Assembly: GCA_002104905.1 (NCBI GenBank)
Contig: MCFE01000682.1
Coordinates: forward strand, 1 to 46,323
Direction: 5' to 3'
DNA length: 46,323 nucleotides
Source: Basidiobolus meristosporus CBS 931.73
Lineage: Eukaryota > Fungi > Basidiobolomycota
The notes below the pieces were generated by a model. That model was not told the DNA's origin. It saw nothing but the letters and a program-made list of their open reading frames with translations, and did not search any database. Both the position numbers and the translations under genes were made by a program. Positions within the stretch are counted from its first letter, which is position 1, and every line of letters starts with the position of its first letter. This document shows positions 18,868 to 46,323 of this stretch, piece by piece.

Positions 18868-19026
18868 AATTCGCATCCGAGTCAGGGGGTTTGGTTTCAT
18901 CACTCGCCTCGTGGCACACGCAGCCACAAGGCAAGCCAATTCTGCGCCTGGCAGTCCATTGCCCCGCAATCAGTGGAGATGAGCTCATGGGATCCGTCGA
19001 TAGAAGCGCTAAATTTCGCCAGACAC

Positions 19027-19150
19027 CCACCTTGACGCCGTATTTCTTCCATCATTACCACCTTGACGTCGTATTCCTTCCATCATTGCCACCTTGACGT
19101 CGTGTCGCTATCATCAATCCCACCTTGACGTCGTATTGCTTCCATCATGA
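19027..19150 (+). repeat. 4 x 31-bp tandem array ending on the P2X start codon
   Basis: Units start at 19027, 19058, 19089 and 19120, each beginning CCACCTTGACGYCGT. The fourth unit contains the ATG at 19147. Confidence 0.9.
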
Positions 19151-35147: not shown

Positions 35148-35831
35148 ATGCTGAAGATCACTGCACTTCTTTTATTAGCTTCTGCTACATATTGCGCACA
35201 GCCAGAGGGTATTGATGTTTCTGACCATCAACCAAATATCAATTGGAAGGCTGTGAAGGCAAATGGCGTTGAGTTCGCTTATGTCAAAGCAACGGAGGGT
35301 ACGACCTTTAAGAGTCCGGCGTTCGGTAGTCAATATAGTGGGGCCACTAATGCTGGCCTAGTGCGTGGCGCCTATCATTTTGCCCATCCTGACGTCTCAA
35401 GCGGTGCAGCACAGGCAAACTTCTTTTCGGCTAATGGAGGCGGATGGTCAGCCGATGGAAGAACTCTTCCAGGTGCAGTCGACCTCGAATATAATCCCAA
35501 CAAATCGGGTACACGTTGCTACGGATTGAGCACAGCTGCAATGACTGCCTGGATTCGCGACTTTTCCGATACTTACCATGCCAAGACAGGTCGCTATCCG
35601 GTAATTTACACTACAACCGATTGGTGGAAAACCTGCACCGGTAATGCTAGCGGTTTTCAAAATAATAATCCATTATGGATTGCTCGTTGGGGTCCCTCAG
35701 TTGGCGAACTTCCTGCGGGCTATAGTTTCTCCACATTCTGGCAATATGCGGATTCTGGTCGCAATCCAGGGGACCAGGACAGGTTCAATGGAGATAGCGC
35801 AGGGCTTACAAGACTTGCGAAAGGTTCGTAA
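35148..35831 (+). CDS. Secreted GH25 muramidase (Chalaropsis/cellosyl-type lysozyme), intronless
   Basis: Signal peptide MLKITALLLLASATYCA; GIDVS (first catalytic Asp), VKATEG, RGAYHF, DLE (DxE), IYTT..WW and FWQY. Confidence 0.95.
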   Translation: MLKITALLLLASATYCAQPEGIDVSDHQPNINWKAVKANGVEFAYVKATEGTTFKSPAFGSQYSGATNAGLVRGAYHFAHPDVSSGAAQANFFSANGGGWSADGRTLPGAVDLEYNPNKSGTRCYGLSTAAMTAWIRDFSDTYHAKTGRYPVIYTTTDWWKTCTGNASGFQNNNPLWIARWGPSVGELPAGYSFSTFWQYADSGRNPGDQDRFNGDSAGLTRLAKGS

Positions 35832-38004
35832 ACTTCCATTAGGTGGGTGTTTGTGAGAGATGACAGGGATACAAAAAAGATTAATCACATGCTTATGACC
35901 AATGTTGAAGGTGTTGGCTGAGCCAAAGGCAAATATCAAAGTTAACCAATGGAGTAGATGTGAACCGACAATAAGCTGTAGTAATAGAAAGGTTGACACT
36001 TGTTGCTAGGTTTTGCTTTCGGGTGAAATTCTTGTTTTCAATAATAAAGATACAGGAGCTAAAACAAATGAAGAGAGTGATGACAGCATTTTAACGTGAC
36101 TCAATTAGATGAAGATAGAGCATTGTACGGCAATCGTTCTGTCAGATTTAAAGCACAACTCTGCAAATAACTTGTTGAAAAGTTGGATTTTCTGTAACAA
36201 TAGTATTTCACACCATTTCGCATTCTTCAAAAGCGTATGTGTAGGGTTTGAAAATTGGAACGATACATAAAAGTTTTGTTTCTTATTGCATATTCGATAT
36301 AGAGTTTAAGGTGATGATTATTCTTATCATAAACTTACGATCCTACACAAAGGGATTGTAGAAGGGTTTGAGGTTTTCCATGTTACGGCTTCATATGTCA
36401 AAGTCCGGACCAAATCTCACTTTTCATGATCAGAAACATGCAACAATTGTCAGGATGTTAAATTGAATCAATAGATTTGACGTAACAATCATCGAACGCT
36501 TTGTTGGTTTCCAAACTCTGCATCACACATCAACGGATCAGGAACAGCATTTACAACCTTGGTATCCTGGTTGGATTGCAATGATGGAAGGCATCCTTCA
36601 GCGACACATGTTCTTGTATGGCCCTGCCGCTGGGTGAGCCATAATGACACAGGTGAAGGCAGTTAATACTTCAACCATGATGATATACAAGATTTCGAGA
36701 TTTGAATAGCTTCAAAGTATTGCGCTATGCGATCTAGTGGCTGTGGATATGTCTAATATGTCAATATCAGCCCTCAAGCTTCGATAAATACTGTAGCAGT
36801 GCCCCATCCAATGGCTGTACTCTAGATATGGAAAGATGATCACAATACCATATATCATATGGACACATGGATTCTTAATTCCCAATACAAATCAGATTGT
36901 GGAATCTCCATAAATCCTCAAATCTAGGCCCTTGGTTTGATCCAACACTGCAATGCGCAAAATAGATTCAGAGAACATTGCTACAGATTATGTTTCGTTT
37001 ACTCAGAAATCCAACTTTATGGTAGATTGAATTTGTACCAGTTGATTATATTGAATTTGTATCAGTTCATACCAAATGAATAGTATGCATTCTTGACCAT
37101 ACGTGCAGTAACGTATGAGCGTTGGAGATCATGGCATGTAACAATTTTCTGGCGAGATCCTACCTCTATTGGAGTATTTGAAAGGGTTGCTGGTCTATTA
37201 TGAGATTTGTATATTGACTAGTAATGCTAACAAGTAAAAAGCGTCCTGCGAAATTAGTGAAGGTTAAGCAATTCCTTAAACCCAAATATTTAGGTTCATG
37301 TTCCAGACATTCTACGGGATTACCCGAGGGCATTGCTACTCAAGGTAAAGCACTATTTAGTAGTAGGTCTCTTCAACCTGGAAATCTTTTATATCCGAAA
37401 GCGTTATATGCACAGGGCGATAGTGATATATGGTATATTGGCATCAAACCATCAATTCCCAATTATAAGGAGTCATCTCTATTTGGACGTGCATTTGTCA
37501 TTAATCTCTTACTCCCAAACGTAGGAAAACAACGGTATTTGAAAATAAATTAAATAATGACATCTGGTAAACAATCCCAAGTGATATATGCTTCGATCTA
37601 TTATTAATATGCTAAGGGGTTGGCGACGATAGCAATTTGATCTGTTCAAACTATGGGCATGTCTTGATGTTGAAAGAGAAAGATATCTGTCCCCACAATA
37701 AGCCACTGGTAGTACAGCCGTGATGCCATGCTCATACTGCTACAATAAGGCTTATAACAATACAGGCCTCCGTACCAGGAGAACTGGCATGCCAAAATAG
37801 GCACCGACTTCATTCTAGCCAGTTGTGTTCGTATATCAAAAATTGCCTTGTTGAACTCTCATGTGTGACTTGGGGGCATTCTGCGTAAAAGAAACTCCAT
37901 CAGTCTCACTACTGAGTCAAATGCATTTGTTGATACATATAATCAATCATTCAATGGTGAAACCTCTGCTGATGTATTGAAGCCTTGACTTACTGATTAC
38001 TTCG

Positions 38005-38070
38005 TTACCTTGCTATATATATGTGACTCACCGATGATTACCTTACTATGTATATGTGACTCACCGACGA
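38005..38070. repeat. 33-bp tandem duplication, each unit carrying TGACTCA
   Basis: ttaccttgctatatatatgtgactcaccgatga / ttaccttactatgtatatgtgactcaccgacga. Confidence 0.75.
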
Positions 38071-38873
38071 CTGCTTTGCCTTACTATATCCTCACTGCTC
38101 ACCTAACCCTATATTTGGCGCTTAGCTTATTCGCCCCTTGTGATTACACAATCACCATAGCTATGAGCCCCCAATGCTTTCTCACCTATCCCTATTTGCT
38201 GATTAGCGCATTTACACCTCTGTGGCCAATCATTTCAAGCTCCCAATTGCTATATAAGCTGTATTGTGTAGTAGCATTTCTCTTCGACTGATGATATACT
38301 GGTTTTCCAGCTTTGCTTCAGGTTTCTTGACTTTGATCATAACCATGATGTGATGTTGTGGAGTCTGGTGGGTTTGTTAGCGCCTTAGTCATTTGTTGAC
38401 TTTAAGTTGGATTCATCAATGAGTGAAATATTCTTTCAAGATAAACTCACCAGTTAAGAGAATTTAATTCCATAGAATCTCTTGATTTGTAAAGAGCAAA
38501 TGAGTAAGCCTGGTGGATTACATAATATATTAATAAGGTACTTTGTGGAATATGCTTCTTAGACATTAAATGTTGTGTTTTCTCTGATAGATTATACATC
38601 CTACAGATCATCCCATGATATATGTGTTCCATGCCCATAGAAGATGTAGACATGTTCACAGCATTCCTTGGTGAATACTTGAGTTATTTAGTTCTTAACC
38701 ATCACTCCAAGTTGCTAAAGTTTGGGTAATAAACTGCTCACTACATATGCAATGAACATGTTTCCAATATCTCTAGATGAACAGGTCTGTGCAGCTTTCA
38801 ACTGTTGGATAATGCACATATCCAGTGAAGTGCTAACCAAGGAAAAGTAGTCATTTATGTATCTTCAATAAAG

Positions 38874-39280
38874 GTGATTAACATACACATTCATTGTAGA
38901 GATGTTCTAAATATATTTTTAATTCTTAGTACACCTGTAATACTCTTCAAAGCATTCTGATATTGAGTCAGGTGATCAAGCTGCACATAGATTAATGTGT
39001 AGCTGATTAGTATAATATTACAAGTCATTCTACGTAATGATTACACATTAATGACTAGATTCTAATACCATTGATAGAGATGATTTAACATACACTTTCA
39101 TTGTAGAGGTGATCCAAGTGTGTTTTTTGCCGTCAATACACCCTGTAATATTCTTCAAAAGCACTCTGCTATTAAATCAGGTGATCAAGCTGCACATATA
39201 TTAGTATATGGTTGATCTAGTATAAATATCACCAAGTCATTCTGTTGTAATGATTATGCACTGATAACTAAACTCTAACC
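38874..39280. repeat. ~207-bp diverged tandem duplication upstream of the UBR1-derived gene
   Basis: Shared anchors taacatacac (38879 and 39086), ttcattgtagag, tcaggtgatcaagctgcacata and caagtcattct at constant spacing. Confidence 0.85.
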
Positions 39281-39417
39281 AGTAATGAACTAGATTTTGC
39301 TGAATGCAGCTTCATTTGTGTATGCAATAGAAATATCTATGACGGCACAAATGAATAAAGAGGAGGATAATACTTTGCATTTGCCAACAACCAATATATT
39401 TGAGCATTAAGATACTA

Positions 39418-40628
39418 ATGGATTCTCTAATCACTGCTAAACTGCAGCGAAAAATAACCCTACCACAATACTTGCACCAAGCGCCCAACTACCATAAGTA
39501 CTTCCTTAGCCCATCAGTAGAGACTGAAATATTACTGGCCTTTCTGACTTCATTGTGCAACAACCAAGACGAGTACCAGGAATTACTCTACCCCCAAAAC
39601 GCACCCGAAGATAGGTACTACCGCAGCTATTGTGCACAAGGATTAGGCAAAGATTAATAACCAACTGGTACTAGGAAATCTACACTAGACGCCTTGCCAA
39701 CAGATTTATTAGTGTCCATAAAGGAAACCCTTGCCACGGTTTTTGATTTTGTCCTGGAAACTTACGTTGTCACACGTCCCCAATGGTCCACACAAACCTT
39801 GGAGTCGGGTAGCATCATAGAAGAGTCCATTGCGGCCGGCTCGTATATATCTTGTGAGGAGATCGAGCAAACTGTCTTTGCCTGTGTTCTTTGGAAGACC
39901 CAAGTGGGGGATCCGAATTCGTCCATTTGCCAGCTTCAAAAAGCTGCTGGTTGTACAACGGAGGCGGCAAGAAATATAGCTACTCTCTCCCAGAGTAAGG
40001 TACCTTTTTGTTAGAAGACCTTTACAGATCACCTTTCATTGACCAGTGGTAGGGAAGAGCAGTAGTCGCTCTATCCACAGATGTAGAGCGTCTAATCAGG
40101 ATTGGGTCTAGTTTGGCATCCTGTGGCCTGCGCGTTACCATTCGGTCAGGCAGAGACACCTTTCGAGAAGAGATTGCCAGTTTACTTCTTCGGTGTGTAC
40201 AGGAGCTATGTACCAGTCGATTGCCACCAATCATCAAGATAGTGCGTGACCAGCTGCTCAGCGGTTGGCAAAGAGATTCTATTGATGTATGCAAACAATT
40301 ACTTCAGATCGATATGCTACTGCTATCTAGTGGTTGCATGTCCGTTGAGGCAAATGGTCACTTAAAAGCACTGTATTACTGTGCTTTTCCGGATGGCAAG
40401 AAAACCTTGAGTACATATTATCCCTTTAATGCTATTCCCCAAGTTTTTGTCTAACTTGCCATTGTTACAGCTTCTAGGTTTACTGCGCTATATACTGCAT
40501 TGACTGGCAGGGTAATAAGCGAGACAAAAGCAGAACTACTTTTTGAATCCTCCAAGCACACAGATGAGTATGATTTCGTTGTTCTAACTCTGGGTGCATT
40601 GCGCCCTTACTCGCTTGTTTCAATATAA
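39418..40628 (+). CDS. Truncated UBR1 (N-recognin)-derived protein, ~345 aa, 4 exons; no UBR box, degenerate ClpS-like domain, no RING
   Basis: Exons 39418-39614, 39675-39999, 40053-40410 and 40471-40628 join in frame through GT-AG introns (1038 nt). Segments LPTDLLVSIKETLATVFDF, FACVLW...AAGCT...KGRAVV, LRVTIRSGRDTFREEI...QLLSGWQ and LQIDMLL...RFTALY match fungal Ubr1 as I recall it. Start and last exon are less certain. Confidence 0.72.
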
Positions 40629-41040
40629 GGTAGAATTAAGTGATATTGGCAATATAAAGAGTATAGCAACGTTGTAAAGCTACAATATACTGGGGAACTT
40701 AAGCTGGAAATTTTCAATTCAGTCATTGGTGCAATACCAAAGAGACTGCTTGCCTGCATTAGCAAAGAAAAGCTCAATGAGTCTGCCACTGTATGTTTAA
40801 GGTGTTTCAATTGGGACAATGTATCATGTCACATTTAATTCAAGTTACTTGTACAATATCAACCAACCTGTATGCTTCAAGCTACAGCTTACATGCAATG
40901 CTATTGATTGACTATTTATACACTTAGAAGTTCTGTATACATCCTGAAAGTACATGATAGTGCAAATCACTGGGGCATTGCTAATTAATTTAGAACCTTA
41001 AAGATCAAACTATATCACTTCAGTAAAATTGGGTAAAATA

Positions 41041-43987: not shown

Positions 43988-46323
43988 TGTTGTAAGAGTC
44001 TTGGAGATATTGGAAGTGATTGGGAGAACAAGTAGATTATGTGGTTTTCACTTAATGATTTATTGAATGTAAAAGTAGTATTTATACTTTTACATGGTCT
44101 TGGCATTACAAACACGTAGAATAGGTTAAGGAAGGTCCCAAGAACATGTGTGCAAAGTTTGGGGCTGTTTGGACAACTTTGAGAATTTTCATGTTCTGGG
44201 TACCTGGTATTTTGGTGAAAATATTCTAAGTAAATCCCGACAAGGAATTTGGTCAGTATTCTCTAGGATTTGAAGATGATGATCTAAGTGACTAAGTTAG
44301 GTGAATATTTAGGTGGAAAATACAAATTTTTACAACACTCCCACTCAGCTAAATGTTCATACTGACTAGTCCTAATTTTGACCTAAGATATTCAAACTTG
44401 TCTCTAGCTAATGGTTTGGTAAATATGTCTGCAATCATTTCATCTGTAGGACAGTAAACTAAGCTAACTAAGTTATTCTCTATAGCTTCACGTATGAAAT
44501 GATGTCTAATATCTATGTGCTTGGTTCTAGCATGAAAAGTTGGATTTCTACCTAATTGTATACATCCTTGATTATCTTGAAATAAAGTAATAGGCGTTTT
44601 TTGACATAGGCCTAAATCTGTAAAGAGCTTTCTTAACCACATTGCTTCTTTTGTAGCTTCACAGGCTGCCATATACTCTGCCTCTGTAGTAGAAAGTGCT
44701 ACGGTTGGTTGCTTTCTTGAATTCCATGAAATGGCTCCTTTACAGTAAAGAAAGGTGTATCCTGTGGTGGATCTTCTGTCTTCTAAATTTCGTCCCCAAT
44801 CAGCATCAGAGTATCCCACAAGATCCTGTTCTGAATCCTTATAAGTGTATCTTAAACAGATATCAGCAGTTCCTTTTAGGTATCTAAAAATCCGCTTAAC
44901 TGCTGCAATATGATCAGATCCATAATTCTGATTATGTTGGCTGACAACTCCCACTGAATATGAGATATCTGGACGTGTTCCAAGCATGATATACATCCGA
45001 CTGCCGACCATAGATTGATAAGGAAAGTCAGGGCTTTCAGATGGCACCAAGCTCTCTTGATTTGGTTGAGTTTTGACCAAGTTAAGGTTTGTCTCCATTG
45101 GGGTAGCTGCCGGTTTACAGTCTTCCATTTTGTACTTCTTTAGTATATCTTGAATATACTTGGATTGGCTTAGGGTAATAGTCTGGGTACTTCTGTCTAT
45201 GGAGAACTTAATCCCTAAGTAGTAACTAAGTTCTCCTAGATTGGACATCTTGAACTCCTTAGATAGGCTGGATTTAGTCTCTTCCAATGTTTCTAGGTTA
45301 TTGGCGGCTATAATAAGATCATCCACATATAGAGCTAATAGAACTGGATTTGCTCTATCTGGCTTATAGTATATACTATAGTCAGCATTACTCCTTTTGA
45401 AACTCAAAGATTCCAAATAAGAATCTATCTTGCAATTCCAGGCTCTTGGTGATTGTTTGAGACCATATAGTGACTTTTTAAGCTTGCAGACCAAATGGGG
45501 GTTATCTTGGTCAACAAACCATCAGGCTGGTCCATATACACGTCCTCATCAAGTTCTCCATTCAAAAATGCAGTTTTTACATCCATTTGATGAATAAAAA
45601 ACTTATATTTGGCTGCAATAGCCAATATTAATCTGATGGAATTAAACTTGGCTACCGGTGCAAAGGTCTCAGTATAGTCAAGTCCTTTTGTTTGAGAGTA
45701 TCCTTTGGCTACAAGTCTTGCTTTGTATCTTTCAATTGTACCATCAGCCTTGTATTTTGTCTTGAAGACCCATCTGCATCCAATTGATTTTCGGTTGATT
45801 GGTAATTTGACTAAGTCCCAAGTTTGATTTTCCATCAGGGCCTGATATTCCTCAGTCATTGCAGATCTCCAAAACTTCGTCTGGGGCTATTTAGGGCCTC
45901 TTTTACAGTCTGGGGCTCATCAACATGGACTGAATAGGCATAGGCTAAGTTTGTACCCTCATTGATATAGTAATTTGGGCTATTTCTTGTCCGATTGGAT
46001 CTCCAGGCATTTGATACTGGAATGATCACTTCTGGGATATTCCTGGGCACTGATTCTGGCTGAACCACAGTTGTAGAGTCCTCTGGAGTGAAAAAATTTT
46101 CATTGTTTTGCTCTGATTCAATCCTGACAATTGGTGGACTTGAGATCAAATTTTCGTCATCATCTGATGTCATTTTTTGTGAAAATTTTGAATTTTCATC
46201 AAACAACACATCCCTGGACTTGATCAGCTTCTTTGCTTCGGTATTGTAGAGTCTGTATGCCTTACTCTCATTGCAGTAGCCCAAAAATATGCATTTTACA
46301 CTTTTTGGCTCAAATTTTGACTG
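43988..46323 (-). mobile_element. Copia copy, 3' half: integrase C-terminus, RT, RNase H, PPT, 3' LTR 43988-44337
   Basis: RT motifs YKARLVAKG, QMDVKTAFLNG, LYGLKQSPRAW and LYVDDL; RNase H GYSDADW, LSTTEAEY, TKHIDIR and IADIFTK. INT precedes RT (Copia order). PPT GAGTGGGAG abuts the LTR. Two frameshifts (~45500 and ~45870). Confidence 0.96.

Follow-up and report, generated by a model that had tools for sequence, protein, structure and literature searches.

UBR1 is the founding N-degron ligase, and communication between its N-terminal module and the remainder of the enzyme (allostery between sites, autoinhibition) is still poorly defined. Some full-length UBR paralogs, Saccharomyces cerevisiae Ubr2 among them, do not read N-degrons; they keep their full length and the RING domain, and remain ligases. 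N- and C-terminal fragments of Ubr1 are said to bind one another in trans, in work by Du and colleagues of 2002. Ubr1 has a C-terminal autoinhibitory domain (PMC3172311) and, in addition, further, poorly defined binding sites; a disordered pseudosubstrate, Roq1, binds its type-1 site (both PMC11914429). Here we describe a short gene related to the front part of UBR1 in Basidiobolus meristosporus CBS 931.73 (assembly GCA_002104905.1). It lies in contig MCFE01000682.1, the whole of which (46,323 nucleotides (nt)) was analysed and is called the window below. We consider it probable that this gene is an intact, unannotated member of a short family derived from the gene UBR1b, having lost both degron pockets and the ligase part, and that it evolves faster than its parent while staying under purifying selection.

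Direct reading of the plus strand at 39418-40628 gives four exons and three GT..AG introns (60, 53 and 60 nt), which join into an open frame of about 345 codons, composed of whole-codon pieces of 65, 108, 119 and 51 amino acids (aa) and two split codons. The frame is open only once spliced: if retained, intron 1 would end it at an in-frame stop and intron 2 would shift it. A preliminary description, made from the letters alone, had joined four open reading frames (ORFs) through three 'canonical' introns of 53-60 nt into a protein of about 345 aa; the frame and the GT..AG borders stand, the donors are not of the consensus type. It had also suggested that an upstream ATG at 39339 would join the frame if one T were an error. 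This is not supported: the ATG opens an out-of-frame upstream ORF in both the window copy and its closest relative, with no indel between the two up to the main ATG. The exons have a G+C content (GC) of 46%, against 34-37% in the flanks. The parts of the gene are as follows.

39339-39410, plus strand: short upstream ORF, out of frame with the main ORF (ATG at 39339, TAA at 39408-39410).
39418-39614, plus strand: exon 1, 65 codons and 2 nt, matching the N-terminal helices of UBR1b (parent residues 1-59; tblastn) and then running into a short unmatched tail, QNAPED-R.
39615-39674, plus strand: intron 1, 60 nt, GTACTA..TAG, phase 2, splitting an Arg codon (AG/G), with an in-frame TAA inside; counterpart of parent intron A.
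39675-39999, plus strand: exon 2, helices downstream of the deleted UBR box, then the ClpS-like domain, first half (tblastn against B. ranarum UBR1, alignment to P0028).
39895-39909, plus strand: codons K-T-Q-V-G at the place of the UBR1b type-2 pocket motif N-D-E-x-H (parent alignment).
40000-40052, plus strand: intron 2, 53 nt, GTACCT..TAG, phase 0, between ..SQSK and GRAVV..; counterpart of a UBR1b intron.
40053-40410, plus strand: exon 3, second half of the ClpS-like domain (GRAVV..VTIRSGRDTFREE, to about 40154), then scaffold helices (phmmer).
40411-40470, plus strand: intron 3, 60 nt, GTACAT..CTAAC..TTACAG, phase 1; counterpart of parent intron C, also spliced out in the sister copy's annotated model.
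40471-40628, plus strand: exon 4 and the TAA stop (40626-40628), ending at parent residue ~470 of 1764 (sequence reading, parent alignment).

The descent of the gene was traced from its translated pieces. In tblastn searches the UBR1 protein of B. ranarum (P0004) matched the window with an expectation value (E) of 2e-43, residues 120-222 aligning to 39691-39999 (41% identity) and residues 223-428 to 40053-40616. Exon 1 aligned Met-to-Met with the B. meristosporus UBR1b locus (L007; 51% identity over 59 aa, E 4e-18) and also matched the B. ranarum UBR1b locus (L006) just 5' of the UBR box. The pieces thus follow fungal Ubr1 in order, as first described, and homology to UBR1b begins only at the Met of 39418. 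Searched alone with phmmer against 1.84 billion proteins, exon 3 (119 aa) retrieved three short paralogs from the same genome (E 5e-26 to 1e-21), then B. ranarum UBR1 (3e-14) and then full-length UBR1s of other early-diverging fungi at residues ~290-410; the long matches carry the Pfam domains zf-UBR, ClpS, WHD_UBR1 and PRT6_C. A fish trichohyalin-like protein (P0005) among these matches was rejected as a low-complexity false positive. In a maximum-likelihood tree the four short copies form one clade (100/100) with a very long stem branch, which groups with the UBR1b orthologs as its sister (joint clade 100/99), and two blocks, GRA..STD and VTIRSxRDTFREE, are conserved between the short family and UBR1b. 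Chance ORFs were considered as an explanation of the gene and rejected. By these alignments it is a descendant of UBR1, within the Basidiobolus UBR1b lineage.

B. meristosporus has two full-length UBR1 genes, UBR1a (P0011) and UBR1b (P0028, K493DRAFT_339176). UBR1b is 84% identical to P0004 of B. ranarum, and the same kinase gene follows both. Both UBR1a and UBR1b occur in B. meristosporus and in B. ranarum, and the two are about 40-50% identical to each other (L007 and L006; P0011 and P0016). Between the two species the synonymous sites of UBR1b are saturated (proportion of synonymous differences, pS, 0.75), and the congeners are therefore deeply diverged.

Other searches added little. Single exons had no match in Pfam, in the case of the ClpS-like domain partly because intron 2 splits it, and NCBIfam returned only noise. 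A word-index protein search with exon 3 found nothing among candidates restricted to 65-208 aa. Exons 1-3 and paralog P0002 had no Ubr1 match among PDB sequences by phmmer, and the link to solved Ubr1 is visible by fold only.

We then compared what the short gene has lost with what it keeps. The first 490 residues of parent UBR1b match both the UBR box (PF02207) and ClpS (PF02617) models. The UBR box model matched neither the exons nor the paralogs, even at E 10 (the parent N-terminus scores 6.7e-20), parent residues 55-175, which cover the box, found nothing in the window by tblastn, and no UBR-box remnant was seen in the window or within 10 kilobases (kb) of the paralogs. The ClpS model likewise had no match at E 10 in the exons or in P0001-P0003, a test that is weak for the exons of the window, where intron 2 splits the domain, and that runs unsplit for the paralog proteins. 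At the type-2 pocket the parent reads CVLWNDETH and the window CVLWKTQVG, so that the Asp and His of the motif are replaced. In S. cerevisiae Ubr1 the equivalent residues are D318 and H321. In Schizosaccharomyces pombe Ubr11 they are D251 and H254, and their exchange in ubr11-T2 (D251N, H254Y) gives a type-2-defective mutant (PMC4447728). The place of the motif reads KTQVG in the window, MSKSA and KSKGR in the other two subfamilies; the former pocket loop varies among the short copies, and hence no new pocket is conserved there. Parent residues 480-1764 likewise had no tblastn match in the window or in the loci of the paralogs (within 10 kb), and the winged-helix, E2-binding, RING-H2 and PRT6_C domains all lie beyond the stop and hence outside the product. 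What remains is a ClpS-like fold, variable in the loop of its former pocket, set between the N-terminal scaffold helices and the first of those that follow it. Lacking a RING, an E2-binding region and either degron pocket, the short protein is therefore neither a ligase nor an N-recognin.

Much of this had been read correctly in the preliminary description: the junction of PEDR to KSTLDALP at intron 1, the motif LWKTQVGD (codons 39892-39912) as a rewritten ClpS pocket, a stop well before the E2-binding and RING-H2 regions, and a UBR1 paralog of about one fifth of the full length. Its statement that the UBR box had been excised needs qualification. The box is indeed absent by Pfam and tblastn, but it was not lost as an exon. 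The UBR box of the parent is interrupted by intron A (L007 3297-3368), a phase-2 intron that splits an Arg codon; intron 1 of the short gene has the same phase and also splits an Arg codon, and all four short copies keep an intron at this position. Upstream of it the short genes lack about 34 codons of the parent, and downstream of it about 66. As judged from this alignment, coding sequence was lost on both sides of an intron that was itself retained.

The other two introns also have parental counterparts. Parent intron B, between ..ANSH and GRAIV.. (L007 3904-3968 in B. meristosporus, L006 815-877 in B. ranarum), is at the position of intron 2, and parent intron C (L007 4402-4464), in phase 1 within ..KKFI-A-ARF.., agrees in position and phase with intron 3. 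Three introns at parental positions and phases argue for duplication of DNA rather than retroposition, and a processed pseudogene (retrocopy) was rejected on the same ground. The alignments show that the short family stems from a duplication, at the DNA level, of the 5' portion of UBR1b, one of two UBR1-type N-recognin ligase genes in the genus. The deletion, the altered pocket and a nearly identical stop are common to all four copies, from which it follows that one truncated ancestor was multiplied; as reconstructed, this ancestor was already without the UBR box (the type-1 site) and without the type-2 Asp and His, and had its stop at parent residue ~470. The upstream regions of the short genes showed no similarity to the parent gene.

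An intact UBR1 is present as two genes, and the short form that the preliminary description knew from one place is not a singleton. At least four copies exist in B. meristosporus CBS 931.73, namely the window copy and three annotated 'hypothetical' proteins, two of them intact and one frameshifted, with the stop codon at nearly the same place in all four. The annotated paralogs are the following.

MCFE01000939.1, L003 5232-6441: P0003 (K493DRAFT_343019), 288 aa, the sister (closest) copy; a four-exon model here also gives an intact frame of about 345 codons.
MCFE01000326.1, L004: P0002, 383 aa, a deep paralog with an open frame.
MCFE01000475.1, L005 9550-10826: P0001 (K493DRAFT_71521), 237 aa, the frameshifted copy.

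The frameshift in the L005 copy is of 1 nt, in exon 2 between ..LWKSKGRDP and ..SDFASQIQQ.., and the public model begins at an internal Met in the shifted frame; this copy is probably a pseudogene or a mis-modelled gene. In P0002 the equivalent of intron 3 (L004 11043-11105; 60 nt, GTAACG..) is in frame and free of stops, and in the public model it is translated as a 20-aa insert. No family or paper describing UBR1 fragments of such a kind was found in the literature, Pfam or NCBIfam.

The window copy and its sister sit in a shared segment.

37626-41040, no strand assigned: segmental duplicate of about 3.4 kb of MCFE01000939.1 (L003 3438-6852), containing the short gene (blastn).

The two segments are 87.8% identical over 3.5 kb, and a further 100 nt (37444-37543) also match. 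Against the sister the window copy has a ratio of nonsynonymous to synonymous substitution rates (dN/dS) of 0.335 by the Nei-Gojobori method, with a dS of about 0.1; this and the other tests between the two copies average over both and do not tell which one is constrained. Over 1038 nt of exon sequence there are 5.0% substitutions and indels are absent (9.6 expected), compared with 9.9% substitutions and 21 indel events in 2273 nt of non-coding sequence (Fisher 1e-6; P 7e-5 for zero exon indels). Exon substitutions number 52, and 28 or fewer nonsynonymous changes among them has P 0.01 under the substitution spectrum of the flanks. Against the deep paralog at L004, synonymous sites are saturated (pS 0.80), nonsynonymous differences amount to 0.28 (pN) and both frames are open, which indicates long-term purifying selection within the truncated family. 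Its amino-acid divergence is nevertheless about 3.4 times that of the UBR1b orthologs (dN 0.35 among the short copies, 0.10 between the two species), and its branches in the tree are several times longer. As dS is saturated for the deep paralogs and for the UBR1b orthologs, these comparisons yield no dN/dS for the deep pairs and no dating against the divergence of the two species. Purifying selection on the short family argues that it is kept as protein-coding. Decay, named in the preliminary description as what would overturn its reading of a kept open frame, was not seen; a decaying unprocessed pseudogene was rejected for the window copy in view of its open frame, dN/dS of 0.335 and lack of indels, and only the paralog on contig 475 shows such a feature.

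An AlphaFold2 model was made for paralog P0002 (383 aa) rather than for the window product, from an alignment of the family with 37 UBR1 N-termini. It has a mean predicted local distance difference test score of 79.7 and a predicted template modelling (TM) score of 0.82. Foldseek gave yeast Ubr1 (7MEY and 7MEX, E 1.5e-5) as the only significant PDB matches, followed by ClpS structures. Superposed on 7MEX with VIA-align, residues 14-360 of the model match residues 14-628 of Ubr1 (Z 22.0, root-mean-square deviation (rmsd) 3.8 A, 313 residues). Residues 133-213 match the ClpS proteins of M. smegmatis and E. coli with Z 11-12.6 and rmsd 1.3-2.0 A (best Z 12.6, rmsd 1.5 A, 80 residues). The window copy would be expected to share this three-strand, three-helix ClpS fold, given its 50-57% identity to the paralogs in the region. 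In the terms of the Ubr1 structure paper, the short protein corresponds to the start of the helical scaffold and Ubr-Box2, without Ubr-Box1 (bioRxiv 10.1101/2021.04.12.439291).

In the ESM Atlas a cluster of 65 eukaryotic proteins (mostly Basidiomycota; 230 aa), all with a ClpS Pfam match, overlays residues 86-338 of the P0002 model with a TM score of 0.85. They probably represent UBR1 genes of metagenomes, fragmented at exon level; short ClpS-plus-scaffold proteins may exist elsewhere. The Atlas clusters nearest to the short family are UBR1/UBR2 pieces that keep the ClpS signature, and a feature search of the Atlas with exon 2 gave no usable match.

A number of observations weigh against an intact, selected gene in the window. 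The public annotation has no model over 39418-40628, its last gene being a GH25 lysozyme at 35148-35831, and the short gene adjoins copia fragments in an AT-rich stretch. Its four-exon splicing is a prediction from sequence; the donors of all three introns (GTACTA, GTACCT and GTACAT) depart from the GTAAG found in 9 of the 11 UBR1b introns threaded in two Basidiobolus species, and the branch-site-like motif of intron 1 reads TAATAAC where the sister copy has TACTAAC. The frameshifted L005 member shows that copies of the family can decay. Taken exon by exon, dN/dS comes to about 0.65 for exons 2 and 3 and is lowest in exons 1 and 4, the ClpS-like part being the least constrained. Protein-search matches included no short homologs beyond this one genome, other Basidiobolus genomes not being covered at the DNA level. 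The evidence for the fold comes from a paralog, and the UBR1 rows of its alignment bias the model towards the Ubr1 fold.

Several of these observations would fit a young duplicate that has fallen silent and is heading for decay, in which case the family was perhaps functional but the window copy is no longer expressed and its open frame reflects youth. The missing gene model, the GTAC donors of all three introns, the altered motif of intron 1 and the broken L005 copy all point this way, and with 52 exon substitutions the neutral chance of no new stop is still about 0.10. However, the exons have changed at half the rate of the flanks and are free of indels against an expectation of about 9.6, they have fewer nonsynonymous changes than expected, and the sister shares the GTAC donors; its annotated model uses two such introns, 1 and 3, as in the window. 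Overall we regard a silent duplicate as unlikely.

The annotated model of the sister also raises the case of a real gene with another product. Threading P0003 on L003 places the donor of intron 2 at a consensus GTAAGG 5 nt upstream and its acceptor 28 nt downstream (L003 5809-5894), different from the four-exon model, and drops a further 138 nt in frame. Both sets of sites are present in the window, at 39995-40080 and 40193-40330, and count against the four-exon structure.

39995-40080, plus strand: alternative in-frame intron, donor GTAAGG, acceptor CCACAG, which would remove SK and GRAVVALSTD (annotated model of the sister copy).
40193-40330, plus strand: 138-nt stretch, an extra in-frame intron in the annotated sister model, coding-like here (2 differences from the sister; UBR1b homology).

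Spliced like the 288-aa sister model, with both stretches removed in frame, the window gene would lose one strand of the ClpS-like domain and part of the scaffold, and GTAAGG is closer to the local donor consensus than GTACCT. Against this, the removed stretches encode sequence common to all paralogs and UBR1b (GRAVV..STD), and it is 40000-40052 that corresponds to parental intron B. The stretch 40193-40330 has only 2 differences in 138 nt from the sister, where ~14 would be expected at the non-coding rate (P 1e-4), and encodes UBR1b-like sequence; it has therefore been under coding constraint, which favours the four-exon model. The annotated P0003 model, moreover, may or may not rest on transcripts. 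We consider a product of this kind improbable. As to K493DRAFT_343019 (P0003) itself, the two in-frame stretches that its model removes are both conserved with UBR1b and with the window, and the annotation may be mis-spliced or represent an isoform.

Capture and multiplication of a gene fragment by a transposable element, with no host function, is very improbable: the gene is present several times, one copia long terminal repeat (LTR) family lies within 0.4 to 2.5 kb of three copies, that of the window included, and the duplicated 3.4-kb unit stops exactly at an LTR start (41040/41041), but 35832-41040 has no transposon protein similarity, the deep paralogs share only exons with the window and not flanks, copia elements are arranged differently at each locus, and the coding sequence is under purifying selection.

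Taking the locus as an intact member of the short family, we asked what its protein could do. The scaffold and the ClpS-like fold have been kept under selection, in several copies, without the pockets and the catalytic half, which argues for a binding role that belongs to the module itself. If it acts, the short protein would act by binding, most plausibly through surfaces with which full-length UBR1 touches its partners or other parts of the ligase; it would then regulate UBR1b, or compete with it, without being catalytic. As a separate protein, the N-terminal module could compete for contacts of the Ubr1 C-terminal autoinhibitory domain and for other binding sites, a proposal that is tentative and, on our estimate, unlikely. 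On a reading that is likewise tentative and unlikely, mini-UBR1 proteins, as free copies of the UBR1b N-terminal scaffold and of a ClpS-like domain without its pocket, could be trans-acting regulators of UBR1b that bind ligase parts, for instance the C-terminal autoinhibitory region, or docking partners and do not respond to N-degron ligands, in effect a natural decoy built from a fragment, kept by selection and present in multiple copies. The alternatives to competition are that the family binds something else in a new, unrelated role, or that it is a relic under weak constraint.

Around the short gene the contig is of mixed character. At 6-32 kb the window has about 50% GC and is rich in genes, and its final 10 kb have about 38% GC and close in Ty1/copia fragments. 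A further feature lies directly upstream of the short gene.

38868-39278, no strand assigned: two tandem copies of a unit of about 200 nt (38868-39065 and 39074-39278), a repeat also found in the sister locus.

This unit could represent promoter-region repeats or a small non-autonomous element. The two contig ends, 1-4830 and 41041-46323, carry the same Ty1/copia family in opposite orientations, with LTR and gag pieces; ORFs for reverse transcriptase and RNase H lie at 44349-46284 on the minus strand, and several LTR pieces are nested or in tandem at the contig ends. Elsewhere, at 18996-19148, a 31-nt unit is repeated in 4-5 tandem copies (CCACCTTGACGYCGTATT..CATCAT).

The short family offers a natural minimal construct for finding binders of the UBR1 N-terminal module. 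Should it prove a species-specific curiosity without a phenotype, it would still be a clean case of a giant E3 gene shedding domains around retained introns. Compared with the UBR1/UBR2-type N-recognin RING E3 ligases (yeast Ubr1 7MEX, UBR1b), the family shares the start codon region, three intron positions, the scaffold helices and the ClpS-like fold, whereas the UBR box, NDExH, winged helix, U2BR, RING and PRT6_C of those ligases are all missing and no Pfam model recognises it. With bacterial and organellar ClpS adaptors the paralog model has an alpha/beta fold of ~80 residues in common (Z 12.6, rmsd 1.5 A), but in the short family this domain is embedded in UBR1 scaffold helices, has not kept the pocket residues and has no match at the sequence level, and no link to a Clp unfoldase is expected. 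Like full-length paralogs of the S. cerevisiae Ubr2 kind, the family has given up classical N-degron recognition; unlike them, it keeps only the front fifth of the protein and cannot be a ligase. If the mechanism suggested here is right, the short protein would resemble Roq1 as a small non-catalytic modulator of a UBR1-type ligase, differing in that it is a folded fragment of the ligase, to which Roq1 is unrelated.

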